From NCBI RefSeq assembly GCF_037042905.1, contig NC_087254.1, positions 33,046,001 to 33,110,000 on the forward strand: DNA of 64,000 nucleotides, read 5' to 3'. A program made the translations under genes and the position numbers. Shown here piece by piece: positions 9,003 through 56,561 of the stretch. Within the stretch, counting starts at the first letter, position 1. Every line of letters begins with the position of its first letter. The notes below the pieces were generated by a model. It made no database searches. It was not told the DNA's origin and worked only from the letters and a program-made list of their open reading frames with translations. The stretch comes from Lytechinus pictus (taxonomy: Eukaryota).

Positions 9003-10292
9003 TCATTTCATTAGACCTTGTCTTAGAGTGTTGCCAGGCCAGGTACTTGTTGTCTGATGGCGAGGTGATGTGAATTTGGGATTGCTGGAGACCACACCTT
9101 CAAAAGTTGGTTCCCAAATTTGAAGAGGAATTGCAGCAACGTGTTTCTTTTGTTTAGTCCATTTGTCTTTCGATCTCCTCGGCGAATCTGGTGACGACTG
9201 CGAATTATTACCGCTTTTCTTTGTAACCTGATCTTCCTTGCCCTGTCGCCCCCCTCCTCGGATTCCTTCACTATAAGGAGATTGATTAACATGATTCGGA
9301 GCTTCGTAGGAGTCCTTACTCTCGTTTTCTCGTTGTGATGGCACCACGAGGACATTGAAAGATGGAGATTTCTTCTGGGTGGGGGAGAGAATACCTTTAG
9401 TTGGCGACGGCGACGGTGTGTGCGCAGTTCCGACGTCGGGTTCGTAAACACGTTCCCGTAAAAGATTGGTTGTCTTTGAATGTGGTTCGTTGGGAGGGTG
9501 TTTTAACGAGGTGGGTGGTAAAGGAGGGAACCGTGTTTCTGAACCGTTCGACACCTTACTGGTGGTCAGGGGTTTTGGAACAGATTTACCCCCTCTCCGG
9601 GATGTGCTTGAAGGCAGTGATAGAGCTCTCTCAAGTCTACTCTTAGGAAGAGAATCGCAGAGGGAGCTTAAAGTCATTCCTGATAAATCAATCGCTGACG
9701 ATCCACTTTTGCTTCGTTCACGATTCTTTCCATTCGATTTCGATCTCCATTTCTCGATGTAAAGATCCGTCTTTGATCGATGCAACCAAGTCGGCGTCGA
9801 ACCCTCACTCATCGTCTCTCTCGGGTCGGTGAGAGGTAATCGTCGAAGAGCACTCTTGCTCCTCGTCAACCCATGGAACGTCCGTTGTCGGATCACCATG
9901 TATTTGTCGAGTCTCTCATTGATGGATCGCTTAAAGATGTCAGAATCCGAGCTCGACACCGCATTTGAAGCGTTCGGTTTTATCTGCACTCTTGCAACGT
10001 CGACGGCGCAGTGACGCGGTGACCAATCCGAGATCGAGAAGCCGTATGGGTCCCCGGCGTCGTAGACGGTGGATGCTGGCATCACTGTCGGCATGGGGGT
10101 GATGATCTGCTGATCGGGACTCGCCCCCAGAGTCCCTTGATTACCGCTACCAGCCGGTGGAGGGGCATGGTGGTACATGGTCCTGTAGGAAGAGATCGGG
10201 GGTGCCGTGTTGATCGTCTCGACATCATTGGTGTCGGCTGGAGTACCACTGAAATTACTCCATCTAGTTTCCGCCATCGGTCCTCGCGTCAT
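9003..10292 (-). CDS. Gene A: uncharacterised 429-aa disordered Ser/Pro/Arg-rich protein, single coding exon
   Basis: Uninterrupted 1.29-kb ORF, GC- and CpG-rich against an AT-rich background, ATG start. IPLQIWEP motif near the C-terminus. Confidence 0.8.
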   Translation of the reverse strand: MTRGPMAETRWSNFSGTPADTNDVETINTAPPISSYRTMYHHAPPPAGSGNQGTLGASPDQQIITPMPTVMPASTVYDAGDPYGFSISDWSPRHCAVDVARVQIKPNASNAVSSSDSDIFKRSINERLDKYMVIRQRTFHGLTRSKSALRRLPLTDPRETMSEGSTPTWLHRSKTDLYIEKWRSKSNGKNRERSKSGSSAIDLSGMTLSSLCDSLPKSRLERALSLPSSTSRRGGKSVPKPLTTSKVSNGSETRFPPLPPTSLKHPPNEPHSKTTNLLRERVYEPDVGTAHTPSPSPTKGILSPTQKKSPSFNVLVVPSQRENESKDSYEAPNHVNQSPYSEGIRGGGRQGKEDQVTKKSGNNSQSSPDSPRRSKDKWTKQKKHVAAIPLQIWEPTFEGVVSSNPKFTSPRHQTTSTWPGNTLRQGLMK

Positions 10293-12086
10293 AATACAAG
10301 CTTGAAGTTAATCTTCCATTCTGTGCTCCGATTAAATTCATTAATTTTTAATATTCATTCACCAAAAGAGATGTCAAATACATTAGGATCCTCTGCAGTA
10401 ATCGTGTTTAACTTGTGACAGAAAGCGAGAAAATCCGACTGAAGATACAAGCCTTCAGTTTGCCAATAAATTAAATTCAAAGTTTTGGCTGAAAAGCATG
10501 AGCGTTATCACACATCTGAAGATACGTGATTCAATTCTTTAAATGAAGATTAAATAGAAATCTTTATCCCTGGCTTTGCCAAAAAACAAATGATTTCGCG
10601 AATCCATGGTGCAACTTTTCATATGATCGTTAAAATCAACTGCTGTATATTCGTGCATGTTTACTCCTGTATGTGTAAATACTTTGGTATTTCCAACTCC
10701 AAGAGTGGGTAAAAGTCTAAAGTCTGTAAACTTTTTAAAAATAGTCTGTCTCTTCTGTTGAGAATCCAGTCAATCGAATACGAAGGATTCATTCGTTATT
10801 TCAAGTATACTTTCCGATGGTCTCGAATTGCCTCAGGATTACAATGAATGTTATTCAGTAAACAAGCGCGAGATATCAGATGCAATGCCGGCTGTTGGTT
10901 GACTTTACTACTATCAAACGGAGAAACGCACATACAACGTGTGTGCCCTTCGCACTGTCGATCAGCACTCACAATGAGATAGCGTATCGTAGCCGTAGCA
11001 ACGCTACGATAGGGGCGAACGGCTGAGAGTTGTTTAGGTCGCTTTTGTTTTCGTTCGTCCCGTGCGGGAATCAGCGTTTCTTTCATGAACTTTGCTCGCT
11101 ATTACCCCCCTCGCCCTCAGTAACAGGGGGTAAATCTCGTGACCCCTTTTTCGTGATGTCACTGCGAGCTCTTCCAGCATTTGCCAAACATCAACTCATG
11201 TTGGGTATGTGAGGCTTACGATGTTGTCTATCTCCGAGGACGTGTTTCCCATCAATACCGAACTTTGTTTGGTATGGTTTAGAGCGAGGCCTGATCACCG
11301 CAGGAACCTGCTGGGTCAGTTTATCCACATTAGTTTATGAAACCGAGGCGAGACCAGTCCGATCGAATAAATGGAGAAGTCCCCCTCGTCTTTGATTGGA
11401 AGACAATCCCATCCATACAATGACAATGGGGATGCTACCCCTCTCTGCATTCTTTTGTTCCGCTAGGCAGACCCTCTTTTTATGGACTCTCCAAAAGAGT
11501 CTTTGAAAGGGATGATTAGCACCGGAGGGGGTTAGTTGAATGCACTCCGGAGGACCATTGAGGTATTGAGTTGTTCCTATTGATCCGTAGCATTTCACAA
11601 AACAGTCCGAGTATCTCTGCTCAAAAAGACCCCAAAACCTGCCAAGGGCACTCGGTTACCTGGGCTGGGATAGGAGGAATGTTTTCATGAACAGGGCCAT
11701 GAAAACAACAAGAAGAACAGAGAGAGAGGGGGAGAGAGAGGGAGCTAGGGGGTGTCTTTGGAAGACAGGGGAGGGACACGGAAAGCTGTTGAGTATAAGA
11801 TCAAATTAATAGTTATGTTGACAATTGATGCAGTGATATACAAAATAAAATCCGTGGCAAATCTATTCTATTAAAGAAAATAGATATTGGAGAAGTGTAT
11901 TTTGGGGGAGGGGTGGTAGAGAAATTAGATTTCATATCCCCTACAGTATCTACTTTCTAATATTCGGAATAAAGAGAAGTGAAAAAAAAAGCAATAGAGG
12001 GGAAGGGATAAGGAATGGCAAGAAATGTAAGCATACAAAGACAAATAGGCTAACAAATAAACATATAGATATGTGGGTTTATGCCA

Positions 12087-12268
12087 NNNNNNNNNNNNNN
12101 NNNNNNNNNNNNNNNNNNNNNNNNNNNNNNNNNNNNNNNNNNNNNNNNNNNNNNNNNNNNNNNNNNNNNNNNNNNNNNNNNNNNNNNNNNNNNNNNNNNN
12201 NNNNNNNNNNNNNNNNNNNNNNNNNNNNNNNNNNNNNNNNNNNNNNNNNNNNNNNNNNNNNNNNNNNN
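12087..12268. other. Assembly gap
   Basis: Run of N. Confidence 1.
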
Positions 12269-12439
12269 GATATATACATTAATTAATAAATAGATAAATA
12301 AATAGCTAGGTTTTGAGAGGCAAAATCAATAAAACATGTATTGATTTACAGCGACATATCATATATAATTAAGAAAGCGATACATCCAAGGATCTAACGT
12401 TACAGCTAAACGAATTTACTCCAGATGAGACAAAATAGA

Positions 12440-13760
12440 ATAAGAACTACATGTGTGTTAAGTGTTTGCCAGTCGTTTATCTATTCATTCATTTTCATCA
12501 AACATGCGCTTTTATACACTCAATTAAAGCAGGTTGCCTCTTTATAAGCCGTTCCTATTACTAGCGTTTGCGTAATTGCCAAAGAACAGAATAAATTATC
12601 TGTGTGAAAAGAAGAAATAAATCGCTTCTTGCAAATTTTCGTCTGCCAAAAGAAAGAAGGAAATCAATTTGACTCTGTTTGTAACAATTGTAGAAGGCAA
12701 AAAGGGTCCTTCGTGAAGTTGTAAAGTGATACAGATTGATTTTATTAATACTGGAAGTCTTTGCTTGAGGTGATCTTTTAGACCAAGATCGTTGTAAAAA
12801 AAAATCATTATCATCTTTTTTTTTTTTCAAATGAAATAAATCCCTGAGGATCTAACTTAAAAGACGGACAACTTTCTATTACAACTTCATGAAATGATAA
12901 ATAACACGAAGCGTCAATATATTTGAATATATTTGAATATTTTGCCAATATGTGCTCTTTTCACAGGATCTCATGCTTCTAATCTATAAGTATAATGCTG
13001 TTATACTTTTCAAACTTTTCGATCAGATTTATATCTTGAAAATTACTTTTCCATCGAATATTTCATTGTTATTCTTCCGTTGCCTATGTAAGCAATACTA
13101 TCATTCTGCGTCTGCTTCGGTTTCGTATATCTCGTTGTAGAGAATTAGACCGAATATGCGCGAATTCTGTTCAAATCTTGAATCATATACCAAAAATCAT
13201 TAACATTTATACCATCATGACTCTCCTTCATAACATGTGGCCATTGATAGGGAGTTTAACTACTTTTATCCTGAATTCCTTTCAATATTTTTACGCTCTT
13301 ATTGTTGTCCTCTTAAAATTGTATGCTGTGTTATTATGCCAGTTTACAATGATTACATATTCATTTATATTCATTGTATATCTATATTATTCATTTTCTA
13401 TTCCTTGCTCCTTGTGAAAACCTTTTTCAATAACGTGATAGCAGCCTAATTCATTCAATTCATTCATTCAAAAAATATCTAGTGTAAATTCTTGCCAAAC
13501 TATTTGATTTTATGATCTTTTCTTATTCATGTTATTAGTAACAACATATATCATGTCATTTTTGTTATTTTGTTTGATTTACCGTATATGTTATGCTTCT
13601 TTCATATGTGTTTACTTTTTACTTTGTATTGTATATGGACCCCATGGAAGAACAGTATAGTCATGTCGACAAAACTGAAAATGGGCTATCCATCCGTTTT
13701 GCATTTTGCATTTTTGTTTTTTTATACGGAAAATAAATACTATACTATACTATACTATAA
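12440..13760 (+). mobile_element. Highly degenerate CR1/L2-group LINE remnant with 3' tail
   Basis: Weak RT-region fragments (AVPITSVCVIAK; LFKLFDQIYILKI). 3' end has ggaccccatggaagaacagta (also at 34776), then aataaa and (tacta)n. Confidence 0.45.
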
Positions 13761-13826
13761 CTAGCCCTAACTGTCAGTGCTATGCTTTTCAGCATTTGGC
13801 AGCTTTGGGCTCTATGTTTGATGCGA

Positions 13827-13989
13827 TGTTTAATGACTTTCAAGCGAATCGCTATTTCATAGGAGGGATGAAATAGCGACAGATACTGTCAAGCAGACAA
13901 GCACAGAGTATGGTAAATGTCATTAAACATGTGAAATAATGATATCCACATGAGTATCATTATGATTCGCTTGAAAGTCATCAAACATC
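13827..13989. mobile_element. Short inverted-repeat element
   Basis: cgatgtttaatgactttcaagcgaatc versus gattcgcttgaaagtcatcaaacatcg. Confidence 0.6.
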
Positions 13990-14650
13990 GAAGCTTAGAA
14001 TTGTTCTTTTTTAAAAATCGTGATATTTTGTGATGCTGTTGCTGAAATCCAGCGGAATGTGAGTTTTGGTGGTCAGATTGCGAGTGAATGTATCTTCTAT
14101 TATCCCGATAACTTTGAATGAAAAAAAGTCATCAAAAGAACCTTCAACTGGACCAAATGACGACAGTCCCAATGATATTCGACTATTGTTGGTGTACCAA
14201 TCCGACAAGACATGCAAAATAACGCTCATTTTCTGCATGACTTTTCAAGGGAAGAAGATTACTTACTCCCTTTTTATTATATTGCGCTCACCGAAAGTTT
14301 GCAAACATCGGTCAGGGTTTTTCATTGGTTGCTTCGATGGACCGCTGGAACTCGCGTTATTCTGGTTTATTGGGGTAAATCGGGGGAGGGGGGAGGGGGT
14401 AGCCTGCTCAAACACCCCAAAAACTTTTCAAGAAGTCATATCGTTATTACCACGTAATGAATGATACCATGGTCAATCCATATGACTACATCTTTAAATG
14501 AAATTTCTCAATTTCCCATTTCAAAACTTGGAATCTATCCAGTACCTTTATAATTTGTCCCATACTCGTGACATTATCACAAAAATTGTGTTTTTTAAAT
14601 AATGAGACGATTTTTACGGTTTATTGTTTATTTGTGTAACTCCGCTGACT

Positions 14651-14792
14651 TGGGTACCGGTAGGAAGTAATTCCTTAAAAAGCTGTGTGCGTTATGAACG
14701 CCTAGCTTAGCCGGGTAATATAGGAGCGCCTTGAGCACCTAACAAGGTGGATATGTGCGCAATATAAATACCTTATATTACTATTATTATTA
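14651..14792 (+). mobile_element. 5'-truncated copy of the SINE at 22563-22832
   Basis: Near-identical reverse complement of about 22563-22699, ending in an (ATT)n tail. Confidence 0.88.
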
Positions 14793-15851: not shown

Positions 15852-18164
15852 ATGATGGGGCAGAATCGAAAACGATTAACAAATAGACCTCGTTACAATC
15901 CACGGATAGAATCTCCGGATTTTATATTGACCAACTCAGTATCGAACTCCTCTTTCGAATCGACTTCGACTTTGTTTAAAGATCAAAGCAGCGGTGGAGA
16001 ATATCCGACAAAGAAACATCGAGGAAGAAATGAAGCCCTACCGACATCGCGGAAAATCAGGAGTAGGACTAGCGATCCAGCTTCGCGTCAAAAAGACGCA
16101 ATCGAGACGTACATTCGCCGTTATGTGACGTCGGCACCGGAGAACGCCAAGAGGCAGAATCCCGAAGATGATGACACACCGACTGGAACACGGGTTCGTT
16201 TGACTGACAATGTGAGGGTTGTCTTCGACGAAGACCGATATCGAAAATCACTTTCAACATGCACGTCACGCTTGGAATCGTCTATCACAATACGCAATTT
16301 TTCGTCGATCCATCATATCGCGGACCATAAAAGGAATGTCTGCGACGAAATGTTCCGCAACCGGTTTACTAAGACAGGAACGAGAAAAGACGATCAGAAA
16401 TTTGACGCAAAGCGGGTATTGAGTGACGAACTTGGATTTGACAACAGTGATGATAACTACGATGGGAAAATTATTTTGATATCAAAAGCTCTTGGGGACG
16501 GATCAAACGAACTGGAGACTGACAATTATATTCGAACAAGCGAGTGTTTGCATGGTATGACACATCAAGACAAGCGTGTTGATAATTTGTTGGATGAGAT
16601 GAAGAAATCGGACTCTGTAATTGCTAAAAAGGGCAAAAGAAATGCTTCGAAATTTCAGAGAGAATCGTTTAGGATTGAGGGATTGCGTGTTGGGGACTAT
16701 GGGCAATATCACGACGAGTTTGCGAGGGATTTTTCAGACTTCCCTCAACCATGTCAACCACAGCCAATTGAAGAAACCACAGATATGAATTGCATCTCAA
16801 CGATCGATACAGGTTTATCAAACAGTGTGCCAATCAGAAGTGAATCAATTTACATTCAGAATGGTCAACGTAACAAATCTGACGGCTCTCCGAAAGAATC
16901 CGATCTAAATAAGATTTCGTCGTTCAATTCGCCGTTCAAAATTATCGGGACCAATGTAGAATCAAATATGATTACGGAAAGCATTGGACTTGCTTCTAAA
17001 ATGGAAGGAAGTGAGTTTGAAAATATATCAGAGCCCTCCATGAGAATTACGTTGAAGATTCCATCAGCCGAGGACCCTGGTGTCACCGGAAATCGATTTA
17101 GTGGTCATCCCGTGGTTCAAGAAGTTAGTGCCGTGTCACCTGTTGTCGGTGACAGTAGTCTTACAAAGGTCGATCCATGTTTTACTTGTCCGATGTGCGT
17201 CGCCGAGAGAGAGAAGGAAAAAAAACAAATGAGTATTAAGGACGGGTCCTTCATGTTACCAGATTCATTACAAGCCGCTGGTTTGCGTGGTGACGAAGTG
17301 ATGGATTTCAGATCTTCGGGAATCTTTGAGAGCAAGCCATTTCTCCCACCCTCAATCCCAGACGGGGTTGAACTGAAGCGTGTAGATGCGTATGACATCA
17401 CAAGTTTGAGCGGAAACTCAAGGCGCAAACCCGATGACGAAGACAACAAAGAACCTAAAGCAGACTTCAGACTCTCCCTGAAGGATGTTCGGATGGAAAA
17501 ATCGTCACCCACTTTGCCACCACCTGCGAAAACTGATGGAAATTCGTTTCATGTGCAAGGTAATGAACTGCAACCGCAGGACAGATTCTCTTTTGTCTCC
17601 GAATCCCCAATCGCAGGTTTCCCGATGGCACTCGGAAAGCAGTATCCCATTCCAAAATTTCGCCCGAGTCCCATCTACTCCAGTAAGTGGGTTGTGGAAA
17701 ACTCGAGTCCGTCGCGCAGTTCGACCTCTCAGCCATCCTGGAACGGAAACATCACAGGAAAGACAGTAGGTGCTTCCGGTACTCACCAAGATTCGGTCGA
17801 AAATGAAATCATGACTATGAGGATTCCTTTCCTGATTTGGAGAAACAAACAGAAAAAAGAAGGAATATCGAGCATCAAGGACAACTGCAAGGGCAACACC
17901 ATAACCCTGAATCATCGACCGGGAAGCAGCCGGGCAACCAAAGTATCTGGAACAGGCAACCCGAAGAAGCTGACTTTGGCAGAGCAAGCACTGCTGACGC
18001 AGAGAATGGAGAGTGATCGCAAGACCGCGTTCCCTTGCCCTCCGAACAGTCCTGCACCTGAACAGCTAGTCGAACTCGTCAACGATCACTATGAAGAAAG
18101 TGAAGATACTCTATCGCAGTCTCACTTACAAGATTCGAAATTGACAACTGATATTCAAGCTTAG
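15852..18164 (+). CDS. Gene B: uncharacterised 770-aa mostly disordered protein, single coding exon
   Basis: 2.3-kb open frame with ATG in an AAAATG context. Motifs RVVF, CFTCPMC, IPFLIWR and FPCPPNSP. Confidence 0.85.
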   Translation: MMGQNRKRLTNRPRYNPRIESPDFILTNSVSNSSFESTSTLFKDQSSGGEYPTKKHRGRNEALPTSRKIRSRTSDPASRQKDAIETYIRRYVTSAPENAKRQNPEDDDTPTGTRVRLTDNVRVVFDEDRYRKSLSTCTSRLESSITIRNFSSIHHIADHKRNVCDEMFRNRFTKTGTRKDDQKFDAKRVLSDELGFDNSDDNYDGKIILISKALGDGSNELETDNYIRTSECLHGMTHQDKRVDNLLDEMKKSDSVIAKKGKRNASKFQRESFRIEGLRVGDYGQYHDEFARDFSDFPQPCQPQPIEETTDMNCISTIDTGLSNSVPIRSESIYIQNGQRNKSDGSPKESDLNKISSFNSPFKIIGTNVESNMITESIGLASKMEGSEFENISEPSMRITLKIPSAEDPGVTGNRFSGHPVVQEVSAVSPVVGDSSLTKVDPCFTCPMCVAEREKEKKQMSIKDGSFMLPDSLQAAGLRGDEVMDFRSSGIFESKPFLPPSIPDGVELKRVDAYDITSLSGNSRRKPDDEDNKEPKADFRLSLKDVRMEKSSPTLPPPAKTDGNSFHVQGNELQPQDRFSFVSESPIAGFPMALGKQYPIPKFRPSPIYSSKWVVENSSPSRSSTSQPSWNGNITGKTVGASGTHQDSVENEIMTMRIPFLIWRNKQKKEGISSIKDNCKGNTITLNHRPGSSRATKVSGTGNPKKLTLAEQALLTQRMESDRKTAFPCPPNSPAPEQLVELVNDHYEESEDTLSQSHLQDSKLTTDIQA

Positions 18165-22090: not shown

Positions 22091-22238
22091 NNNNNNNNNN
22101 NNNNNNNNNNNNNNNNNNNNNNNNNNNNNNNNNNNNNNNNNNNNNNNNNNNNNNNNNNNNNNNNNNNNNNNNNNNNNNNNNNNNNNNNNNNNNNNNNNNN
22201 NNNNNNNNNNNNNNNNNNNNNNNNNNNNNNNNNNNNNN
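22091..22238. other. Assembly gap
   Basis: Run of N. Confidence 1.
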
Positions 22239-26608: not shown

Positions 26609-26739
26609 CTATAACGTCAAAGGTAAGATAAAGAGATGGTTACAACAGCAATTGGACAAACTTAATATCACCTTTTTTTTATTTGAATCGATCTAATTTC
26701 AATGATTAACGACAGGCAATATCCACTACATCAGTAAGT

Positions 26740-28219: not shown

Positions 28220-28485
28220 CTGATATTATAAATCAAAGATATGGTATGAAATCAGCTCTATAGATAAAAAAAATAATTTCTAATTCAATTCGACCCATAT
28301 AATTTATGACCAGAAAAAAACTTATTCATTCCTTTCAATGTATATAGCAATGTGATACAATTTCTTCTTCTTCTTCAGATTCAGAGATTAATTAATTAAT
28401 TCATTCATTTATTCTTCTTCTTCTTCTTCTTCTCCCCCTTCTCTTCCTCCTCCTCCTTCGGATAAAATACTAAATCATGTCAAAC

Positions 28486-29442
28486 CTTGGTGAGTATAAT
28501 CTCCTGTTTCCCCGAAGACGACCAGGGCTCTCTCTTCTTCGACGTACCTGTTTCCCATCATGTTGTGGATGAACTGAATGCCAGTCTGGCAGATGTTACA
28601 GATCGATGCATGGATGAAATCCCAGATAACAAACATTACAAAGACGGCGAAGATCTTTCCATCGAATACATCAACCCTCTCATTCCTTTCCTCTTCCATT
28701 TGCTCTTCTTCCCTCTCCGCCTCTTCCTCCTCCTCCATCTCATCATCCTCGTCTCCGTCGTCGTCCCCAAAGATGATATATTGGACGACCTGGAGCCCGA
28801 TGTTGAAGATGCTCACAAAAGGGTGGAAGATGATTCCAAAAGGTATGAGGATGCAAATCAAGATGACAAAGATCACTGTCAAGACTTGCGTGAAGAAATC
28901 ATCCTCGTCTTCTTTCTCTGCCTCTTCCCTCTCCTGTCCTTCCTTCTTCTCCTCCTCCTTGTCTTCTTCCTCATCATCTCCCTCTACCTCCTCCCACTCC
29001 TCTTCCTCCTCCTCTTCTTCTTCCTTGTTCTCCTCCTCCTCTTCCTCCATATCATCATCCTCCTGGTCCTCGTCATCGTCCCCGAAGATGATATACTGGA
29101 CGACCTGGAGCCCGGTGTTGAAGATGCTCACAAAAGGGTGGAAGATGATCCCGATAGGTTGGAGGATGCACATCCAGATGGCAAAGATCACTGTCAGGAC
29201 TTGCGTGAAGAAATCCTCCTCCAATTCCTCATCCTCAATGATGGTACCCAGGACGAGTTGGAGTCCGGTTTGATAGAGGCTCCCGAAAGCTTTGAAGATG
29301 TACATCCAGATAAGGAAGATCATTGCAAAGATCTGACTGAAGAAATTGTCAGATTCACGATCCTGTGACGTAGCGTAATCGTCATTGATGACGTCATCTC
29401 CCTCTGAGCCGCATGATGGGTAGCTGCTGTAGGAGGCCTCGT
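28486..29442 (-). CDS. Gene F exon 5: repeated hydrophobic segment plus poly-Glu modules
   Basis: Extends ORF 28475-29323 to acceptor ctaaaaag|AC in phase 1; 957 nt; donor CAAG|GTTTGA; internal duplication with 315-bp period. Confidence 0.8.
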
Positions 29443-34327: not shown

Positions 34328-34638
34328 NNNNNNNNNNNNNNNNNNNNNNNNNNNNNNNNNNNNNNNNNNNNNNNNNNNNNNNNNNNNNNNNNNNNNNNNN
34401 NNNNNNNNNNNNNNNNNNNNNNNNNNNNNNNNNNNNNNNNNNNNNNNNNNNNNNNNNNNNNNNNNNNNNNNNNNNNNNNNNNNNNNNNNNNNNNNNNNNN
34501 NNNNNNNNNNNNNNNNNNNNNNNNNNNNNNNNNNNNNNNNNNNNNNNNNNNNNNNNNNNNNNNNNNNNNNNNNNNNNNNNNNNNNNNNNNNNNNNNNNNN
34601 NNNNNNNNNNNNNNNNNNNNNNNNNNNNNNNNNNNNNN
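34328..34638. other. Assembly gap
   Basis: Run of N. Confidence 1.
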
Positions 34639-37074: not shown

Positions 37075-38268
37075 TCATTGTGCAATGTCTGCGTGACTGG
37101 TGACATCATCCGGCGTATTTGGTGGGCAAAAATGGCCGACGTCAGACGGCTTAAAGTCGTTACACAGTGGGCAATCCCTTTTGTGGCCATGCAATGTTCG
37201 AGTCGAGATTCCTTTGACCGATTCGTAGCCAGATGTATTCGTATTCGACCCACTGGACACCCGTTCTATAGGTAACGACAACGACGCCGTGGATGACGAC
37301 CCATGAAGCTTTTCTAAACGCGCTTGCGTCGCGTCATCGATGATATCGTAAAGACCGTCACTGCGTAAGATGTATTTCGAGCTTGGTTGTGTCGTTGATG
37401 AGGTGATGTTAACAAGATGAGCACAATGAGTTGTTGGAAGGAATTGATCAAAATCAATTGGCGATGGAAGACGACTCTCTGGAGAGGACCCGGTGATGTT
37501 GGTCCCGTTATTGTTCTTCCCTAGTCGCTGAGATAATTGCTGTTTTCGCTTAGAAGCAAGTTTATGAAGAATCACTCTTTCGCGAGGAGATACATTACTC
37601 GGAGTTTTCAAGGGTGCAGAAGGCGAGGGTACGAGAGGCAAGAGTCGCTGTTTCGAAGATTCGACAACCGACATCAACGAGTCCGTCTTGACTTCCGAAG
37701 TCGATGATGAGTGCGGTGTCGAATATTTAAGACAACCGATCGGCCATCGGATTGCGCGAGCCATCCGGGTATTCTCTCTCGCTCTACTATGACTAAATGG
37801 AACGCTCCCAACTTGAAGAGATCCAATGAATGCCGACGTTGGACATTGGTAAAGTGAGCTACTACTCGACTTTACGCTGTGCGCGTCGCATTCCTCTTCC
37901 CTTTGTTCTTGCGTGTGAAACCCGTCACGCAACGGTAGTGTTGGCGCGTTTGTGAGGGACTTGTCATCTTCTCCCTTATTTTTCGACTTCCTTCTTTTCC
38001 CTGGCTTCCAGCATCTCATTCCAGTGCCTTTCAATCGCTTCCAAGAGTCTCTATCCCGTGCCTCGACGGTCAATCCGCACTCTTCGACTCGAATTCTGGG
38101 CAAGAAAGGGGTGTTGTTGTGCGACAACTTCGGCTTAGACGATGACGATGTCCCTTCGCCCCCAACTTCTAAAAGGGACAGTTTGGTGTCCAAATTGCAA
38201 CCACCATAAGCCGATCTCAGTTCCGATTTCATCGCCATTATTCGAAATAATGCATCCAAAGTGACCAT
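37075..38268 (-). CDS. Gene C: uncharacterised 397-aa disordered protein with a C-terminal HxxDCPLC...CPPNTP module
   Basis: 1.19-kb GC/CpG-rich ORF with ATG start; C-terminal motif shared with gene E. Confidence 0.82.
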   Translation of the reverse strand: MVTLDALFRIMAMKSELRSAYGGCNLDTKLSLLEVGGEGTSSSSKPKLSHNNTPFLPRIRVEECGLTVEARDRDSWKRLKGTGMRCWKPGKRRKSKNKGEDDKSLTNAPTLPLRDGFHTQEQREEECDAHSVKSSSSSLYQCPTSAFIGSLQVGSVPFSHSRARENTRMARAIRWPIGCLKYSTPHSSSTSEVKTDSLMSVVESSKQRLLPLVPSPSAPLKTPSNVSPRERVILHKLASKRKQQLSQRLGKNNNGTNITGSSPESRLPSPIDFDQFLPTTHCAHLVNITSSTTQPSSKYILRSDGLYDIIDDATQARLEKLHGSSSTASLSLPIERVSSGSNTNTSGYESVKGISTRTLHGHKRDCPLCNDFKPSDVGHFCPPNTPDDVTSHADIAQ

Positions 38269-41065: not shown

Positions 41066-43249
41066 TTAACAGTTTAAAGTAAAAAAAATGATATAAGATT
41101 GGAAAAAGACAACACATACCGTAAACTGCAAAATCAGAATTTAATGATACTATAAATACTTTTGAATTTAATAAGTCGAATCATAATGGTAGTTCCCAAA
41201 ATTTTGTTAATTTCAATCTAGTATAAAGTTTGGAAAGCTGGCTATTGTCTCATGAAATTAAAGGATTGTTAAATATATTGATGTATATGTGTGTTTGACA
41301 TAAAATTTACCTCTTTCGTTATTCACGACAGTTGGACTTCATGGTGACAACACCTGAATTATTAATTCGATAAATCGATATACATTATTTAGTCCCAACA
41401 ATTGGTGTGTGGTGATATCATTTAATCACTGAATTATTGATTGAATTAGGATTGAATTAGGATATGCTGCATATCATTTGTACGATTATTTGTATTATGG
41501 ATAATTATTCGTCTTTTATGAACAGTGTTTTGTTGATATTGATATTGTAATATTTTGCAATGTACCATTACTTTGATTTTGAACTGAATGATTTAATAAA
41601 TATTATTACAAAACAAAACAAATATTATTGTTCACATTCGTGAAACATTTGTTCGTATTTAGAATGGGGAGTAAATGTCTGGAAAGATTTGGTCCTGGGG
41701 TATAGGTGGAAGGGGGAAGTTGCCCCCCCCCCCCCTCTCGAAATTTTGAAGACATTTTTTCTTACTGAAAACTTTCACAAACATCACGAAAAGTGTCAAT
41801 TTTACTTTAGGAATGCCAAAGCGTTCCCATGACAAACTCGGTCGTTTCGATCGTTGCCTCGCTTTTGAGTTTCTTCGAAAAATTTGTAGTGTTTTGCCCC
41901 CCCCCCTCCCCGGAAAAAAAAAATCTGCTTCACACTCTGAAAAGGGAATACTTTCTTGCACTCTCCTACATTTCCGACTTTCGTCTGTTTGATGAGTTGC
42001 AATTCGAATTAGACTTGAATCTATAAAATTTACACACTAAAGTATATAACAAACAAATTTATGATTGTTGGGTAAACTGCCAAGTACAACGCACTTTAAT
42101 AGATAAATTTTCACACAATTGTCACAGCATTTCAAGTTATTTTAGCAAAATATATATATTGTATGTATTTTTCTATACTCAATGGTGACCAAACCATTTT
42201 TGAGAATGTAGTAGGCCTAGTCCAGCATCTCCCCTCATCAATGTTCTCATAAGAAGACAATAATCTACGATAATTCTCAGTGTCACCAGTAAATAAACAA
42301 AAACCTTACCATTTTTAAGCAGGTTAAGTAATTAAGGCCTGTGTAAATGACAGTTTATGTTTCCCGAAGTTCGAAGATTGCAGCTCTTGAGTTGTCGACT
42401 TACTGCCATCAACTATTTAAGTTCCACGTTTGTAAAGCTTTAAGTGTTACAATTTCATGACAAAGTCGCTGGGATCCCAAGGCAAGACTCGCTGAAATTC
42501 ACAATCATCTGAATATCGATATGTAATAATCATTCTATGTATTAATAGAATCCAATCCACAACATTTTAAGTCTGTTAGATCATAATCCTGTAATTGCAG
42601 TTACCGTTGTACGCGTTGTTAATGCAGTCATTACTAACTACATAAACACCAATCATATTTGATGAACTCAAATCCTTGACACCCGTTGAAATCGATTCAA
42701 TTCAAGGTGTCGCAAAACCATAATATATGCAAATGGGGAAAGGTTACTTGGAGTTGAAAATGAACAGTTCTTCCGATGTAATTGATTTTGTTGCCCAGTT
42801 CGAGTTAGTTAGTTAATGTTGAAGGGAAGATAAAAATGTTTCTATTATCCAGCGACCTTACAACTTCTTAACTCTCGCTCTTGCTCTGCAAACACCATCC
42901 TTTGTTGAGATGGAGAAAGATAATGAGAGAGTCGGAGGTGTGTTGGTACAACGATCGAATGGATGTTATTTGCTCATATGCCTTAGTTTTATTCCAGGTG
43001 TGTGTGGAGAGGAGATTGCGCACTTCGGTGTGGGTCATAGTGCGGCGTACGAGGAATATAAGAGGAATATATTTCATCTAGGAGATGTCCGATTGTTGAT
43101 TTCGACGACGGTGTGCATTTAGGGGAGGAGGGGTGAGAGGAGGAATGAGGAGGAGGGTGAGAGGTGAAGGAATGAGGAGGAAGAGAGGGGGTCATGGGTG
43201 TCTTGATGATAGAGCGACGATTATTTAGATTTAGGGGTTGAAGATCAGG

Positions 43250-43750
43250 TTGACGATAATGATGATGATAACGATGACAATGGTGGTGGTGATAATGACG
43301 ATGCTGTCGAAAATGATGGTGATGATGATGATCATCATCGTGACTATATTGATGGTAGTGATGATGAGGATGGTGACGATGATGGCATTGATGAGGAAGA
43401 ATAGGATTTTGGTGGTCATGGTGTCCAATAATTATATGTTTTGCAAAAATAAACATGATTACTACAATCATAATTATTGACTATTGCGACTGTGTTTGCC
43501 ATGATGATTGTAAGTCTGTATAGTAACCATGAATGATTGAAGAAAATAATGCCTAAGGTAATGACACAAGAAGAATAAAAAAAATTATGATAAAGAAAGG
43601 GAATAACTAGGCCTACCAATGATTGCGAAGGTGGGGGTCATGGTTACAATAATGTCGATGGTTATGCTGGTGATAGTGATGGTGGTAGTGATAATGAAGA
43701 TGATGATAATGGTAACGAATTGGGATTGTGATGATAATCACAATCATCAT
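43250..43750. repeat. (GAT)n-type low-complexity tracts
   Basis: Source of the spurious His- and Met-rich ORFs here. Confidence 0.85.
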
Positions 43751-47131: not shown

Positions 47132-48309
47132 TTAGCATGAAACACCTGCTACGCAAGCCGCACAACCCGATGGACCTTCCGCAGATCTTTGGCTGTAGCT
47201 CAAAATAGGGGGTAATCGAATCGATCGCATATCGATACTAATATTGAGTCGTCTGCCCCGACTCCACACGTAGGATGAGGGACATCCGCTTGTAACATTG
47301 TCTTCAACAGTTTTAGGGATTTCAGGACATTTTTTACCATGTTTCAAGCATTTCGCTGGAGACGTCGAGTCTGCGTATATGCATCCCATTGATCGTCGGC
47401 GCAGCGAAACTGATTTACTGCGGAGAATGTCTTTCAAGGCTGGGCGCCACGAAAATATCGGAATCTCGGAACTCGTCTTCGGCCGTTCGTCAACATTCGG
47501 GTAGTGTTCGATCGTGTCCTGTGCTTTCGCAACTGCTTCGATTTGCTTGTTGAGATAGTCTCCACTTCCGGAAATGACCGAGTCGTTATCATCTTCGACA
47601 GCCTTCGTGCTGAGAGAGGAGGTGACCTCGTATCGTATCCTCGGACCAGTGATCGAGCGAGATGATACGACTGGCAAGCTATCTGAGTCAATCTTTAGTG
47701 TTGGAGGAGAGTAAACTTGGGCTCTTGCGCTTTTGGACCTCGGGATGGGTCTCTCACTGTTCTTATCCTTGTGGGCTTGAGCTGGCACAACATCTTTGCT
47801 ATAGCTTCTTCTATTATGTTGAGTATTAGAGCTCGGTCTCTTGACTGGGGAGGTAACACCGAGTGACTTTGATACTACCATTAACATAGACTCGTCACTT
47901 TTTAAATGTGTATCATCAAGTTCTTGATCGGGTAGTTCTTGTGTCGCTTTCTTATCGCGGCAATTAGGGCATTCGCAAATATCTTCAGACGGGATACTGC
48001 ATTCAGAAAGGACGAACTCATCTTTCTGCATCAAATCCATATTAATCTTTATTGGTACTCCTGTGACCTTTAACCCATCGTGGTACTGTGAACCAATCCG
48101 AACAACCGTCACGCCGGCGCACTTGCTGGTTTGTAACTTCTTCGATGCTTGGACGATAGAGGGCGATATACCACCACGGAGCGATTCGTGCTCGTAATTA
48201 TTATGTGTCTTGAGTTTCCTGACTTCCTGGTAGACGTCAGACTCGGTCATGCGATCAGGGTCTTCGTCTTCTATCCTCCGGTAGTCGATTTCCAGTTCAT
48301 CATCGGTAA
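47132..48309 (-). CDS. Gene D exon 2; spliced product about 500 aa, disordered, with CECPNC, IPIFSWRP, RLPPI and a Cys-rich C-terminus
   Basis: Acceptor ttttttttcag|TT at 48309, phase 1, runs in frame into ORF 47132-48250 (FTDDELEIDYRRIEDEDPDRMTES...). Confidence 0.82.
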
Positions 48310-48526: not shown

Positions 48527-48881
48527 CACTAGCGTACCTAAGGGGCGGCAGGGGGCAGACTGCCCCCCCCTGACGAGTCACAACTGATACAGGGGAAGTG
48601 CCCCCCTTTTGAGAAACCAAATTGATAATTTGTAATGTAAAAATGCAATAAAAACAGACGTGAAGACCTTTTTTTTTTGCTTGTCAATTTTTTTTCTGGT
48701 AAGGAATCCTTTTTTTTGGTTGAAGACCTTTTTTTTTTGCTTGTCATATATTTTTGTTGTAAGAAATCCTTTTTTGTGGTTGAAGACCTTTTTTTTTTTT
48801 TTTTGCTTGTCAAATTTTTTCGCGGACGAAATATCCTCCAAAAAATTTGCCCCCTTCTGGAATATCCTAGGTACGCCAGTG
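48527..48881. mobile_element. hAT-type non-autonomous element in the gene D intron
   Basis: 8-bp TSD CTTTAGAG at 48519-48526 and 48882-48889; TIR cactagcgtaccta / taggtacgccagtg; internal 60-bp repeat about x3. Confidence 0.9.
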
Positions 48882-50435: not shown

Positions 50436-50760
50436 AGACATTGCTCTTACAGTCGGCACTTCTCACACGGGCCTTCATGTGAGAAACACGAAGTGAAGCT
50501 GCCGCAGAAGCTGCACGATAATTTCCCGCCAATGGTCTCATCCCTCCGTTCACCGCGGTCGTTCTTCTAACCGCCGTCCGGCTTCGTGGGATGACCGCGT
50601 CGCGATCATGTCTTCGAAGCGACGCTTGAATGTGACTGCTACTGTAAGGGCGTATAAGGTGTTTCTTGGTAGTGAGTAGCATGAAAGGTTGGTCTGAGTC
50701 ATCAGCATGCGTATGACCTGGGGACGATGTTCCTTGGATACCCCAATCAATGGATGGCAT
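50436..50760 (-). CDS. Gene D coding exon 1
   Basis: First in-frame ATG (CAAGATG) gives MPSIDWGIQG...ADCKSNV; donor T|gtaagt, phase 1; 325+1178 nt = 501 codons. Confidence 0.75.
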
Positions 50761-52425
50761 CTTGGAGGAGTTGTCAAGGTGTGCCGAAATGGGTCGGATT
50801 CTTCCGAGATTTGCCTCTCTTTTGTTGACAAGAAGCGGGATGAGACGATTCAATCTGCCGTGAAGGAGTTCATCATTTCAATCACAAAGAAGCATCCGCA
50901 TCAATTAAGGAGAAATGATGTTGAAGATTTAATCAGGAGAAATATAGGCAGGGCGAGTTCAATCTTCATTCCTTAACAAAGTATTTGCCCAATTATATAT
51001 GGAATCATTCGATGACGTAGGGATGATTCTTGACACAAACCTTTGCTATTTATATAAACGATGAAGTTGAATGTCACAACCTATTTCATTTATGATAGTT
51101 CCCTGATTCTCAGCACAGAATCAGTCTAAACTTTTCCCGGTGCTACCGAAGAATCTGAATAGAAATACTCATTCTTGACGAGCAGAGGATTTCTTAAAAG
51201 AATTATGTTAAAATGCTGAACGATATCTACTAAAACAATCGTAGGAGTTAAGACCAATTCAATAATATTTGGAATCCACCAACCTAACATATTTCGAAAC
51301 AGTCGTTCGTAAAGATTTAGCTCATTTAACAAAATGGTGGAAAGAGTCTGGTGAACTCTAAAACCTTTCTTCCATATCGAATGACGTCGAAGATGAAAAT
51401 GACTTGTCACCTTTCCTTTCACCTTCTCCATAGCCATTCTTTCAATAACAAAAACATTTCGGCCAATCCTGTTGTTCCCTTTGCTACAAAATCCAGGATT
51501 CGAAGAAAGGAACACCTCGATTCTCATTTAAATACAAAGTAGTTGTCAAGTTTGGATTATCTCATAAGATTTCACACTTTTATTGTTCTGGTCAATGACT
51601 GACAAGGGACGTACAACAGGTTTTGGTTAAACCGAGGTCCTGAAAACAATAGCCCGAATCTTGATGGATCTAATTGTCAGAGTCCTGGAACAAAGCGAAC
51701 AAGGTCATGATTAAATTGGTTCTTATTCATTTTATAGGACGTTTGACAGATGAAAGAATCGTTCTTGTTCCAAGGAATAAATCGATGAATGATTTTTGAG
51801 GCGGACGACATATCGCAAAGTTAATTAAATTCAAGTATGGACTCCCAAAGTCGGCGCGCATATGAAAACCTAAAGACAACAGAACTTGTCATCTGTGTTG
51901 TCAACTAATATCACGGATTTTACAACTTAAATTCAAGCATAAAATCATGTAATGGATTTGAAATGGACTATGAGAGCTTCACATTATGGTGAAGAAATTT
52001 TAATGGAATGTGACGAGAAAAACAACTTATTTTGAATGAAGGTTACAATGTCTGCACCAGGTTTGAGAGTTTGAATAAAAGGATATAAGAGTGACGTCAT
52101 TTTTAATCAATTACAAAGAAGCGATACACCGTAAAACCTGATTTAGACATTCTAGGGGCTTTGACGAAGAAGAGAGAACAAAATCAATTTGGTTTCGAAA
52201 TACGGTTTAGTTTTGAATGAAGGTCAATTTCATAAAACTTGCTGGTCCACGATCAAGTTCTCCCCCTTTTCACTTTCATTCTGAGAAATCTCTTTATTAC
52301 TCGTTTTCTAATTCTAATTACTCTAATTCTTTTTCTCTTTTTACTCTTTCTCTTTGTCTTTTTCTCTCTTTAAGTCTTTCATATTTTTTTTCTCATTTTG
52401 TTGTTGTTCTTTCTTCTCCTTTCAT

Positions 52426-52560
52426 NNNNNNNNNNNNNNNNNNNNNNNNNNNNNNNNNNNNNNNNNNNNNNNNNNNNNNNNNNNNNNNNNNNNNNNNNNN
52501 NNNNNNNNNNNNNNNNNNNNNNNNNNNNNNNNNNNNNNNNNNNNNNNNNNNNNNNNNNNN
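52426..52560. other. Assembly gap
   Basis: Run of N. Confidence 1.
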
Positions 52561-53716
52561 TTCTTTATTTTCTATATCTTTCTCCATTCCTTTCTATATT
52601 CCTTCATTTCCTTTGATATTTTAAACATGTTCTAAGCATGTGATCATTAATTGCTGATTCTTTACACAATCACAGAATCCTCCAAGAGTCCCGTTTCAAA
52701 AACAAATTTATCATCGAAGAGCTTCGAAATTCCCACAGGGTGTTCAAACATTATCCCTTCCCAAAGTGATTTCTAATACATCATTCGCATCTATGAAGCC
52801 GACTCCAGACCTTTCAAAGCTATTTACGTTATCTGAACGGTGGCATATCATTGGTCGACTTGGAGACGGTTTCACAGATGTTATACTGCATTGAGGCAAC
52901 TCCATTCGTTTGCTTCTTGAATTCATACCCAATCCAAAGTCTAGATTTCTATTTCATTATATTTGACTTATGCCGTTCGAACGTATCATGTATAATCTTT
53001 ACAAATATAAAAAAAAAAGTTTTATTCTAGGATAGAATTCAAACACGGAGAGTTGAATTTAATAATATTTGTATCAACACGTCTTTAAATCCATCAAAAC
53101 ATACAGACTATGCAATTGTGATAGATAATGACTTTTGATGAAAAAACAACTTTTGTGTCAGCCCAATTATCCAAATAAAATACATTTTCAGAGACGCACT
53201 TTATTAGAATGACTATTGAACTGAAAATGTATGTGTCTAAAAGAATATTTAAACGAATAGAATTTATTCATTTAAAATGAATCTTGATTTGTTTCACTAG
53301 AAATTCTATTAACTTACCCCTCGGATAAGGCACACTGTTGAACATTGAATATATTGTTTTAGGATGAGAAATAAAGCTAAATAAAACAATCAAGGAATCA
53401 ACATTCATAAGTGATAAAATAGTTTCTTTATTACTGCACTTGATAAAATTAACACAATATATATATTATAGGCAATCATGGTCAATTTTTATTTGTTGCG
53501 AAGTGTACAGAAGAAAAATACATGTATATATATCAATCTATACCAATATGCACTTTGACTTCAAATATTAGCCCTACTTTTTATAACCCTGATTTATTGT
53601 TAAAAAAAAACATCCGCAATTATGATACAGTGCATAAGAATGAAAATTCTCCATGACAAAATTTTCAACAATGATAATACTTCAAAGCTGAAATTTTGCT
53701 GGATAAGTCGACCGGA

Positions 53717-53858
53717 GCCCCGTTTCATGAAGATTTGTTATATTAACAAATGCACAATTTATATTAGAAATTTACTATTAGCCAATCAAATTGAATGATT
53801 TCAGTAGCTTTAAACTTTTATTGCAAATTTGTTACAATAACAAGTTTATGAAACGCCC
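53717..53858. mobile_element. Short MITE
   Basis: cgtttcatgaagatttgttat / ataacaagtttatgaaacg termini, similar to the 18972 family. Confidence 0.6.
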
Positions 53859-54914
53859 CGCTACATGTGACGCAAATCTAGTCCACAACATGGGCCCAAT
53901 TATGCGACCAAGGTTCCTCATGTTTAATAATTATTTCTTTCCTTATTTTCCCTTCCTTTCCGACACTTTTCTTTCTCCTTTTGTCCCATTTTCACTAGAC
54001 TTGACAAATCATATATAGGGGGGGGGGGGGGTGGAGGGCGCCCCACATTCCAGGCCAATTCCACACTTAAACAAATTAATATGAAATAAGGATAGAATTA
54101 TCAATCAATCTTCGGTAGTTTCGTCGAATTCGGATGTGAACTTTGCAGGTAAAGGAGTAATTTGTGTTTTACTAAATTTTATCATAATTTTCGTGATAAA
54201 ATGATTATCACTTGTGGTGTTAGTGACGTCGCATTTTTTTTCCTTTAGGAAAATGAAATCCGAAATATAAACTTTTTTAAACATGATTTGACTCCGTATG
54301 GAATGATTATTGCGATTTTGTTTTGATATAAGGGAAAGAATCTTCCTCCTCACATACTTTTCATTATATTTTAGAAAGATAAATAGTTTTTATATACCAC
54401 ATACCATGAAATACAAATCATGAAATTAGTTTTGTTTTTTGTTCAAAGCATTAATTTTTGCTATCATATGAATCTAACAGAAAATACACTTTAAAATTAT
54501 ATTCATAATCAGCCCCAAAATCCTTAAGTCTTGAGTCACGTATTCCTATTCTCAAAAAGTCACTCAGAACAAACACAGGCTATATTTATATGAACTGTTT
54601 TTCCCTGCTTGTACATTGATTGCATTCCTCTTTTGATATACTTGCTAGTCATGAATTTAGTACATGGCTTTAAAAATTATGCATCAAGTTGATGTGCAGA
54701 GTCGATTTTAATTCAAGATTATAGTCGTACATGTCAATGGGATCGATATAAATCGGAAGCTATTATGCAGATATTATTTCTGCTAAATAATTGATCAATA
54801 AAATATCAAATTATAAATCATTTACACAAATTTGAATAACATAAACAAATTTAAATAATGGAAAAATATAATAACTTCTGATAGAGTCAAGGATTACTAC
54901 TATGTGTTAGAGTG

Positions 54915-56561
54915 TTAGAAGTCTGAATAAAACCGTTCAACCGGATAAAATCCGTAATCCTTTTTCATAAACGATGTGGGGCTGTTAGGAGGGCAGATAC
55001 CGCCTCCCGGTGTACTTTTGAAGAAATTACAGAGCGGGCAATCGAGACTATGCGACGGTACGATCACGGGGGCGAGTTGAGATGGACTACCGTACACGAA
55101 GACAGTATTAGACGTCATGAACCGGTTTTCCGGCCAGATGACGTGGGGGTGAGCGGGTTGCAACTTTTTCATGACGGACTCGGCGATGTCGTCACCATGT
55201 GTATGGTCTTTATTGGAAAGATTTCCGTTCATGTCTTTCAGCATGGCGCTGCTGTGTTTCATTGTCTTGCGTCTGTTTTTGGCAGCGCTGACGCATCTGT
55301 CTCCCTCATCGTTGCTTAAAGCTCCTTCGGAGAGTTCGGGCGTGGCGATTTCACTTCGCATCGGCATCTTTCTCTCGTCAGTTTCGGAACTCGTCGGCCG
55401 CGTCGTGCAAGCGATCGTGTCCGAGTTATAACCACATTCGTTTCCCTCCCAACGAACTCGATGTTCTTTTGAGTTGCAGCTGTCACTGTCTTTGTCACCG
55501 CTATAATTGTCATCATCTTCGAGTCGTGCGAGGATGACATCTTCCAAGGTTGCAGTACTTAAATCAACATCGACGTCGATCGGTTTATTTTCGACACGTG
55601 GTAATCGAAAAAACGCTGACCTAGTTGGTCGCTCCGTTTCTTCAATTTCCTTCGTTGGTTTTCTTTCATTTGCTGGTGGCAGCTTATCCTGATTTCTTAC
55701 TTTCTTTCTTTTTGCATTGTCATCACTGTCGTTTGACGACACCGACGATGTCGCTACCTTGACACTGGCCTTACCTCTTATCATTCCCTCGCTATCACCC
55801 CAACTGACTGAGTCTACTTTCGATGTCGAACATCGCTGTCTCCGCTCACTTTTCGTCGCTGGTTTGTTCGATTTCGCCCGATCAGCAACTGGTGCCGACA
55901 ATGACTTCCTATGTTTCTGCAAGTTTTTCACCATATCTACCCTGCTGTAGCTTTTCCCTCTAACTCCTTGAATCCCATCCATTGCATCTTGCTGTTTGGC
56001 CGACTCCTCTTCGTTCCCCGAATCTTTCCGACTGCCCGACGGAGATGACCGAGACGATTTCGTCGATGACGTATCACTCTGCTTCGGTTCGGTAATTTTC
56101 GGCAGCTGTAGATCCTCCTGATTCCCCGCTGGTGCGGTCGAATGCTTGGGTGGGTTAACTATTCCAGCATCCTTCCACATCTCTTCCATCACTTCATTCG
56201 CCGTTTTCGTCAGCATCTCCAGTTGCTTGTCACTCACCCTCCCTAGAGGCCGAAAATCGACCCTCCGCTCAAGCGACGATAAACGCCTGCAATGTTGATA
56301 CTGATCGGACCGCGTTTGGCTGACATTCCGACTCTGCTGCCGCGACTGTCTCTCCGATGCGTTCGAATGTTTTTGATTGACGGCACTGCGACGTTTAATC
56401 GACGTCGACGCTCGCCACTCCTTCTTATATCTGATACTGGTGACCGTTCTTTCGACTGCTGAGAGGGCGATTCGAGCAGGGGGGTGTGAGAACGGGGTGG
56501 TAGCGAGCAAGGTCGCTGGCATCACCTCCATCATTGAGTCTAATCTATAATCTTGCTTCAT
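54915..56561 (-). CDS. Gene E: uncharacterised 548-aa disordered protein with a C-terminal HxxDCPLC...CPPNSP module
   Basis: The listed ORF starts at TTG; the first ATG is 56561 (MKQDYRL). In-frame stop at 56598-56600; 5'UTR acceptor tttttcgcag| at 56650. Confidence 0.85.
   Translation of the reverse strand: MKQDYRLDSMMEVMPATLLATTPFSHPPARIALSAVERTVTSIRYKKEWRASTSIKRRSAVNQKHSNASERQSRQQSRNVSQTRSDQYQHCRRLSSLERRVDFRPLGRVSDKQLEMLTKTANEVMEEMWKDAGIVNPPKHSTAPAGNQEDLQLPKITEPKQSDTSSTKSSRSSPSGSRKDSGNEEESAKQQDAMDGIQGVRGKSYSRVDMVKNLQKHRKSLSAPVADRAKSNKPATKSERRQRCSTSKVDSVSWGDSEGMIRGKASVKVATSSVSSNDSDDNAKRKKVRNQDKLPPANERKPTKEIEETERPTRSAFFRLPRVENKPIDVDVDLSTATLEDVILARLEDDDNYSGDKDSDSCNSKEHRVRWEGNECGYNSDTIACTTRPTSSETDERKMPMRSEIATPELSEGALSNDEGDRCVSAAKNRRKTMKHSSAMLKDMNGNLSNKDHTHGDDIAESVMKKLQPAHPHVIWPENRFMTSNTVFVYGSPSQLAPVIVPSHSLDCPLCNFFKSTPGGGICPPNSPTSFMKKDYGFYPVERFYSDF

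Follow-up and report, generated by a model that had tools for sequence, protein, structure and literature searches.

An echinoderm-restricted neighbourhood of five intron-poor genes in Lytechinus pictus with largely disordered products and conserved, possibly docking, islands

Five long open reading frames (ORFs), here called A to E, stand out in a stretch of 64,000 nucleotides from a chromosome of the sea urchin Lytechinus pictus (contig NC_087254.1, positions 33,046,001 to 33,110,000; "the window" denotes this whole stretch), the background of which has a G+C content of about 34 %. A preliminary description of the sequence had presented them as an old, fast-evolving tandem family of orphan disordered proteins that share short motifs rather than global similarity. 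We lean towards reading the region as an echinoderm-restricted, gene-poor neighbourhood in which five intron-poor genes fall into three groups and encode largely disordered products, the conserved islands of which would act as docking sites. As judged by sequence comparison, the five genes are not one family: C and E are paralogues, B is set apart, and A and D are separate lineages. The coding regions are as follows, with positions given in the window:

9003-10292, minus strand: gene A, one coding exon, 429 amino acids (aa); exact match to the annotated protein XP_054762992.1 (LOC129269509)
15852-18164, plus strand: gene B, ORF of 770 aa, divergent from A; uncalled in the L. pictus annotation
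37075-38268, minus strand: gene C, one coding exon, 397 aa; exact match to the annotated protein
47132-48309, minus strand: gene D, exon 2, 391 codons and stop; GT-AG model
50436-50760, minus strand: gene D, exon 1, beginning MPSIDWGIQG
54915-56561, minus strand: gene E, one coding exon, 548 aa; exact match to the annotated protein

All five ORFs of the preliminary description are present and none is affected by an assembly gap. It had given each gene one very large coding exon. Because their ORFs equal the annotated proteins exactly, A, C and E are single-coding-exon genes, whereas D has two exons encoding 500 aa, with a product identical to XP_063961948.1. The join of 50436-50760 to 47132-48309 is the only GT-AG solution for D and is the same in L. 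variegatus. In A, B, C and E, the start codon is preceded by in-frame stops.

Every motif instance quoted in the preliminary description occurs in the five proteins. An unbiased scan covered all patterns of three to seven residues common to at least three of the five proteins and compared them with 100 shuffled sets, the background being shuffles of the five proteins themselves. CPPN.P, found in B, C and E, scored 10.8 and was the only pattern to lie above all 100 shuffled sets (maximum 9.3). CP.C reached 7.4, slightly below the 95 % level (7.9), and IP...W scored 4.8, under the median shuffle maximum (5.7). In its full form, CPPN[ST]P appeared in none of 5000 shuffles and was retained in 16/16 orthologues of B, C and E from up to three classes, with one holothurian variant, CPPPPNSP. 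All three proteins carry it within 40 residues of the C-terminus. In ungapped profile segments weighted by conservation, CPPN[ST]P scored 35.6-38.0 and DCPLC 27.8, whereas reversed profiles, used as the null, gave at most 19.2. Of the motifs proposed, CPPN[ST]P is the only one above the unbiased shuffle control, and it is conserved in the orthologues of each protein that bears it. Because about zero occurrences are expected in shuffles and every orthologue has kept the motif, chance is an unlikely origin; convergence is a possible one.

We know of no catalogued motif that corresponds to CPPN[ST]P. A full-text literature search found no paper containing the string, nor anything for the six LOC identifiers. 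When a mixed profile of C and D was searched against 1.84 billion representatives, the orthologues of C and D were recovered, but no additional protein with CPPN[ST]P; the only other match was weak (E 2.5e-4), to a repeat-rich protein of 698 aa without the motif.

Retention of the motifs among the orthologues of each protein was as follows:

A (10 sequences): RSK[ST] 10/10; IPxxxW 7/10 (PL..W invariant); LP[PKR][IV] 2/10; CPPN[ST]P 0/10; CP.C 0/10
B (4 species): CPPN[ST]P 3/4 (PPNSP 4/4); CP.C 3/4 (C..C..C 4/4); IPxxxW 3/4; LP[PKR][IV] 0/4; RSK[ST] 0/4
C (8 sequences): CPPN[ST]P 8/8; LP[PKR][IV] 8/8; CPxC 4/8; IP...W 0/8; RSK[ST] 0/8
D (6 sequences): LP[PKR][IV] 6/6; CPxC 1/6; IPxxxW 1/6; RSK[ST] 1/6; CPPN[ST]P 0/6
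E (4 sequences): CPPN[ST]P 4/4; CPxC 4/4; LP[PKR][IV] 4/4; IP...W 0/4; RSK[ST] 0/4

The patterns of the preliminary description were also tested singly against expectation, which is a post hoc comparison. LP[PKR][IV] was observed 4 times against 0.24 expected and is conserved throughout the families of C, D and E. RSKS occurred 5 times against 0.25 expected, and its conservation is confined to A, the instance in D being almost without counterpart. CPxC holds for E and largely for B, but it is kept in only half of the C sequences, is nearly absent from the D orthologues and has borderline enrichment. The IP-hydrophobic-W motif is conserved in A and B, but Lytechinus-specific in D. Two further patterns, hydrophobic-x-[IV]-x-G (7 observed against 3.0 expected, p 0.03-0.11) and RPx[ST] (5 against 2.8, not significant), are at chance level.

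The strongest relation within the window joins C and E through a common C-terminal module, H-x2-3-D-C-P-[LM]-C-x11-12-C-P-P-N-[ST]-P. Its two copies, and the CPPNSP of B, lie at:

37093-37230, minus strand: C-terminal module of C, residues 347-392, H..DCPLC-x12-CPPNTP; homologous to the module of E
54960-55091, minus strand: C-terminal module of E, residues 491-534, HS.DCPLC-x11-CPPNSP; invariant in 4 echinoid orthologues
18036-18053, plus strand: CPPNSP of B, residues 729-734, near the C-terminus

C and E were the sole significant pair in an all-against-all BLASTP comparison (25 aa, 60 % identity, E 7e-7), in agreement with the earlier statement that no global alignment exists. A profile-profile comparison of the two with hhalign gave a probability of 96.7 % and an E-value of 4.3e-10 over 44 columns; the expectation that whole-protein BLAST would not group such proteins is supported for C and E, which it barely linked. 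By this profile alignment, C and E are true paralogues via their C-terminal module. Outside the module, LP[RK]I, RLxPxV and E.VIL..L match collinearly and with similar spacing, albeit weakly. The C family is represented in echinoids, in Acanthaster (a sea star) and in Amphiura (a brittle star), and orthologues of E were found in echinoids only, with identities of 96 % (L. variegatus), 76 % (Strongylocentrotus purpuratus) and 52 % (Diadema). E appears to have arisen in the echinoid lineage by duplication of C, the older gene.

Invariant islands of C are LP[RK]IR[VI]E.CGLTV, E.V....LA.KR, which is predicted to be helical, and G..CPPN[ST]P. In the first of these, LP[RK]IR[VI]E fits the calcineurin PxIxIT pattern, P[^P]I[^P][IV][^P], in 8/8 orthologues, and is a lead only; the island of C differs from that pattern in running on as E.CGLTV, and neither LPKITE of E nor LPPIL of D fits it. 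In E, the conserved KDAGIVNPPK at residues 130-139 (56145-56174, minus strand) resembles DVGHFCPPN of the module and may be a degenerate internal copy of it; the segment score was 18.2, about the null ceiling. A PP1-binding RVxF motif in E was considered and rejected, as RVPW in Diadema breaks the rule. The S. purpuratus orthologue of E was formerly named "TFIID subunit 11-like", a name for which no support was found.

The G+C content peaks locally at B, with 0.456 compared with about 0.34 in the surrounding sequence, and B gave no match in a search of 5.8 billion proteins. Its relatives were reached by walking from the A and C loci. In Diadema setosum, an intact syntenic ORF of 740 codons, divergent from A and likewise uncalled, is 33 % identical to B (E 5e-79), and its start is conserved (MMG.NR.RLTNRPRYNPRIESPDF). 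Annotated proteins occupy the position and have the orientation of B in Acanthaster (712 aa, XP_022091374.1, between C and A) and in Holothuria (630 aa, HOLleu_18925, divergent from A). Under a hidden Markov model (HMM) of B derived from both echinoid sequences, the sea-star protein scored above 1000 shuffles. The holothurian protein was assigned by its position and by the collinear motifs C..C..C, I...I[WY]RN.Q and PPNSP. Besides CPPNSP, two islands of B are conserved:

17178-17198, plus strand: CFTCPMC of B, residues 443-449; C-x2-C-x2-C invariant in 4 species of 3 classes
17823-17840, plus strand: IPFLIW of B, residues 658-663, followed by RNxQ; retained as IPFLIW, IPLIIW or ISLKIY

That B is uncalled in L. 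pictus and D. setosum is probably an annotation gap. The same fact, together with the empty protein search, could suggest that B is no true L. pictus gene and that the frame is open by chance or belongs to a pseudogene or to the remnant of a transposon. We consider this very improbable: 770 codons are open in sequence of about 40 % G+C within the local G+C peak, the Diadema ORF is intact and has the same start, annotated sea-star and sea-cucumber orthologues lie at the same position, and no transposon domains of Pfam were found in B.

A belongs to a pan-echinoderm family: homologues were found in echinoids, holothurians and crinoids, and the sea-star copy adjoins B. The conserved islands of A are NERLDKYMVIRQRTFHG, LPLTDPRE, HRSKTDLYIE, RLPPL, IPLxxWEPSFD and a QQPSPLK end; the RSKT that is invariant in A might be a 14-3-3-type site, which is a lead only. 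The island that had been compared with B and D is:

9114-9131, minus strand: IPLQIW of A, residues 388-393; P, L, W and then E-P invariant in 10 echinoderm sequences

In the crinoid Anneissia japonica (locus L012), A is flanked by runs of N of about 2.1 and 2.8 kb, so that the presence of a B-like neighbour cannot be judged there. The database cluster at 90 % identity that contains L. pictus A also holds fragments of 32-54 aa named "acetolactate synthase", which is a clustering artefact.

The mixed C and D profile search found orthologues of D in echinoids only. Their conserved islands are LKVTG, IFSWRPALKDILRS, RLPPI and a C.AC.AGVS..C end. The CPNC, IPIFSW and RSKS of D were absent even from Strongylocentrotus and, since they are not conserved in the D orthologues, are Lytechinus-specific coincidences. 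A recognisable counterpart of D lies downstream of E in Diadema antillarum (L001:18307-19356), spread over all three forward frames and uncalled; it is either a pseudogene or the product of frameshifts in the assembly and was left out of the alignments. In D. setosum (L009), the 10 kb upstream of C contained no match to D at E <= 0.01.

Part of the arrangement of these genes is conserved across classes. Read in the orientation of C, the window has the order E(+) D(+) C(+) B(-) A(+), with B and C convergent and A and B divergent. Acanthaster has C(+) B(-) A(+) inside 11 kb, D. setosum has A, B and C inside about 20 kb, the divergent A/B pair is present in Holothuria, and E is followed by D in S. 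purpuratus and D. antillarum. Because order and orientation are the same in Acanthaster, the C-B-A core is older than the divergence of sea urchins from sea stars, which lies about half a billion years back. In this part, the cluster is therefore old, as the preliminary description had it.

Several neighbours of these loci were noted. In S. purpuratus, a called single-exon gene of 588 aa (L010:16515-18281, minus strand) lies downstream of D at the place expected for C; it resembles none of the five genes and has no Pfam match, and by eye it has a gag-like Cys/His knuckle and may be a retroelement insertion. Upstream of C and on its strand, at the place of D and E in echinoids, gene-sized ORFs are found in Acanthaster (L008:2642-3985, plus strand; unannotated) and Amphiura (L011:738-1805, plus strand; XP_072043420.1), which have a 38-residue match around YTA.NTRIEFA in common (E 1e-4). 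They were rejected as orthologues of D or E for want of any signal, and they have no significant relation to B either. In Amphiura, B was not seen within 10 kb of C; its usual place downstream of C is taken by an ORF of 869 codons (L011:14119-16725, minus strand) that by eye looks like a Toll-like receptor with leucine-rich repeats and a TIR domain.

Searches of Pfam with the five proteins and all their orthologue sets, PDB profile searches and a search of Rfam found no relative. The term "orphan" thus holds as far as Pfam and PDB are concerned, but not for the distribution of A, B and C, which occur in several echinoderm classes. In AlphaFold2 models, the mean predicted local distance difference test score (pLDDT) was 44.7 in C and 37.8 in E, with 311/397 and 481/548 residues below 50, from shallow alignments (4-8 sequences) that by themselves lower pLDDT. 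Short helices alone reached 70-87, for example residues 228-249 of C, which correspond to the conserved E.V....LA.KR island. By composition, the proteins fall on the disordered side of the charge-hydropathy boundary or close to it. The proposed disorder is accordingly supported by AlphaFold2 for C and E and by composition only for A, B and D. The picture of motif islands set in low-confidence sequence that is poorly conserved elsewhere is supported as well. The ratio of nonsynonymous to synonymous substitution rates (dN/dS) was 0.13-0.17 for E and 0.15-0.24 for D, which indicates purifying selection on both; to call the genes fast-evolving was an overstatement. In a simple hydropathy test, the maximum Kyte-Doolittle mean over 19 residues was at most 1.06, without a segment resembling a signal peptide or membrane helix. 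Secreted or membrane proteins were rejected for lack of a hydrophobic segment, and an intracellular role is likely because neither a signal peptide nor a membrane segment is present.

The proposal of a single tandem family holds in part: C and E are related and B has the same CPPNSP end, but A and D are without profile signal. A comparison of A with B aligned 8 columns of IPLxIW only (E 0.2), and A or D against every other family gave E-values of 0.1-0.64 with probabilities below 1 %. It is distinctly unlikely that tandem duplication of a single ancestral gene gave rise to all five, with divergence until short motifs alone remained. The physical clustering of the genes, four of them on the same strand, their coding sequence in one very large exon, and the demonstrable relation of C and E would agree with such an origin. 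So would segment matches around the null ceiling of 19.2, namely IPLQIW/IPFLIW of A and B (21.2), RFPPL/RLPPI of A and D (22.5), PRIRVE/PRIRYE of C and D (21.6) and CPMC/CPLC of B and E (22.1), but these are not collinear, A having RFPPL and then IPLQIW and D having IPIFSW and then RLPPI. The conservation of LP[PKR][IV] in the families of C, D and E also speaks for a common ancestor, but the profile comparisons of A and D, the sub-median score of IP...W and the restriction of the CPNC, IP..W and RSKS of D to Lytechinus speak against it.

Apart from its CPPNSP end and its Cys cluster, B has no detectable similarity to C or E. The genes might be unrelated and lineage-restricted apart from the C/E duplication, with the CPPNSP of B convergent or due to chance and the neighbourhood kept by regulatory constraint or inertia, which we regard as doubtful. 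Convergent short motifs are known from disordered regions, and the distance from the Cys cluster to CPPNSP is about 280 residues in B against 12-13 in C and E. Only 6-15 columns connect B with these two. An identical six-residue motif in three adjacent genes, in each case no more than 40 residues from the C-terminus, never produced by the shuffles and retained in every orthologue of three classes, speaks however against an origin by chance.

According to the reading that we favour, in which the genes form three groups with docking islands, each protein would be a disordered adaptor and its conserved islands would be docking sites. For CPPN[ST]P, which lies near the C-terminus and has an invariant Ser/Thr-Pro, this would mean a docking site regulated by proline-directed phosphorylation, and the small Cys/His cluster beside it may bind metal. 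Where C orthologues have lost the second Cys of CPLC, another His is found nearby (CPLAH; GHFC), as a metal site would allow. Through the CPPN[ST]P that they share, B, C and E would engage the same partner. In its furthest form, which we consider unlikely, the proposal would make CPPN[ST]P and the Cys/His cluster an undescribed, echinoderm-specific docking or metal-switch module that brings one partner to B, C and E, the C-B-A arrangement having been kept since before the echinozoan-asterozoan split as co-regulated parts of one pathway.

Several results weigh against the favoured reading. The relations B-C and B-E consist of 11-15 columns around CPPNSP with hhalign probabilities of 5-7 % (E 0.005-0.008), and from the sequences at hand convergence cannot be separated from ancestry for the link of B to C and E. 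With the module removed in a truncated-profile test, the best local match between C and E had an E-value of 0.32, so that paralogy over their full length is plausible only. By HMM score, the holothurian "B" was not above shuffles, 788 of the 910 scored shuffles doing as well. Within the module itself, the second Cys of CPLC is gone in 4/8 orthologues of C, and the AlphaFold2 pLDDT of about 50 gives no support for a folded knuckle.

The latter two results also bear on the possibility, somewhat unlikely in our view, that the C-terminal module folds into a small zinc knuckle, with a structural role and His and Cys ligands, rather than being a linear docking motif. The spacing H-x3-C-x2-C-x11-12-C in E (4/4) and in the C proteins of sea star, brittle star and Lytechinus resembles that of known Cys/His zinc knuckles, as does the invariant C-x2-C-x2-C cluster of B, and orthologues that have lost the second Cys have a His nearby. 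The ligands vary among the C orthologues, however (CP.C in 4/8), no Pfam zinc finger matches, no secondary structure and no confident fold are predicted there, and the most conserved residues, P-P-N-[ST]-P, are not metal ligands. Docking sites of the ELM type in disordered adaptors, in particular proline-directed [ST]P phospho-sites, are a further comparison: CPPN[ST]P is an invariant six-residue Ser/Thr-Pro motif in a disordered tail, much better conserved than its flanks and common to otherwise dissimilar proteins.

In the vertebrate secretory calcium-binding phosphoprotein (SCPP) cluster, tandem genes for disordered proteins are connected by their gene structure and by short motifs and not by alignable sequence. 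The urchin genes are similar to it in that they are neighbours, encode low-complexity Ser-rich products, have a paralogy that eludes BLAST and are conserved in short islands. In contrast to SCPP proteins, the urchin proteins have no signal peptide or secretory character, their genes have one large coding exon rather than many small phase-0 exons, and their paralogy is demonstrable for C and E only, in a cluster restricted to echinoderms. With taxonomically restricted ("orphan") genes, they have in common that homologues were found in one phylum only, with order and orientation kept across classes. They are, however, old and under purifying selection, and not young de novo genes.

The remainder of the window contains four N gaps, 1.6-3.9 kb from the nearest coding sequence:

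12087-12268: assembly gap separating A (1.8 kb away) from B (3.6 kb away)
22091-22238: assembly gap, 3.9 kb downstream of B
34328-34638: assembly gap, 2.4 kb downstream of C
52426-52560: assembly gap lying between E and the first exon of D, 1.7 kb upstream of the latter and outside the D intron

No reading frame crosses or touches a gap, and therefore intergenic distances alone are affected. Between D and C, a His-rich low-complexity ORF of 160 aa (42989-43471, minus strand) is not a called gene. The same holds for 28475-29368, a segment of about 0.9 kb in which several frames are open on either strand. Read on the minus strand, this segment has two copies of a hydrophobic unit (FFTQVLTVIF...GIIFHPFVSIFN.GLQVVQYIIFGDDD) with poly-Glu/Asp between them, and all its Pfam matches were below threshold (ZIP, E 2e-5); it might represent an exon missed by the annotation or else a purine-rich repeat. 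Tandem repeats lie at the flanks of the cluster: two copies of a 292-bp unit with 99 % identity at 687-1277, and interleaved units of 163 and 192 bp (85-93 %, about 1.8 kb) at 58365-60157.

In conclusion, the genes described here would define new echinoderm-restricted protein families, namely A, B and the C/E pair, for which no Pfam model, structure or paper was found. A conserved, unannotated gene of 770 codons is added to the gene sets of L. pictus and Diadema. The cluster is also a worked example of the reach and the limits of reading motifs for paralogy among disordered proteins. The significance of the finding is moderate, and it provides a concrete candidate for a linear motif in an urchin that is amenable to genetics.

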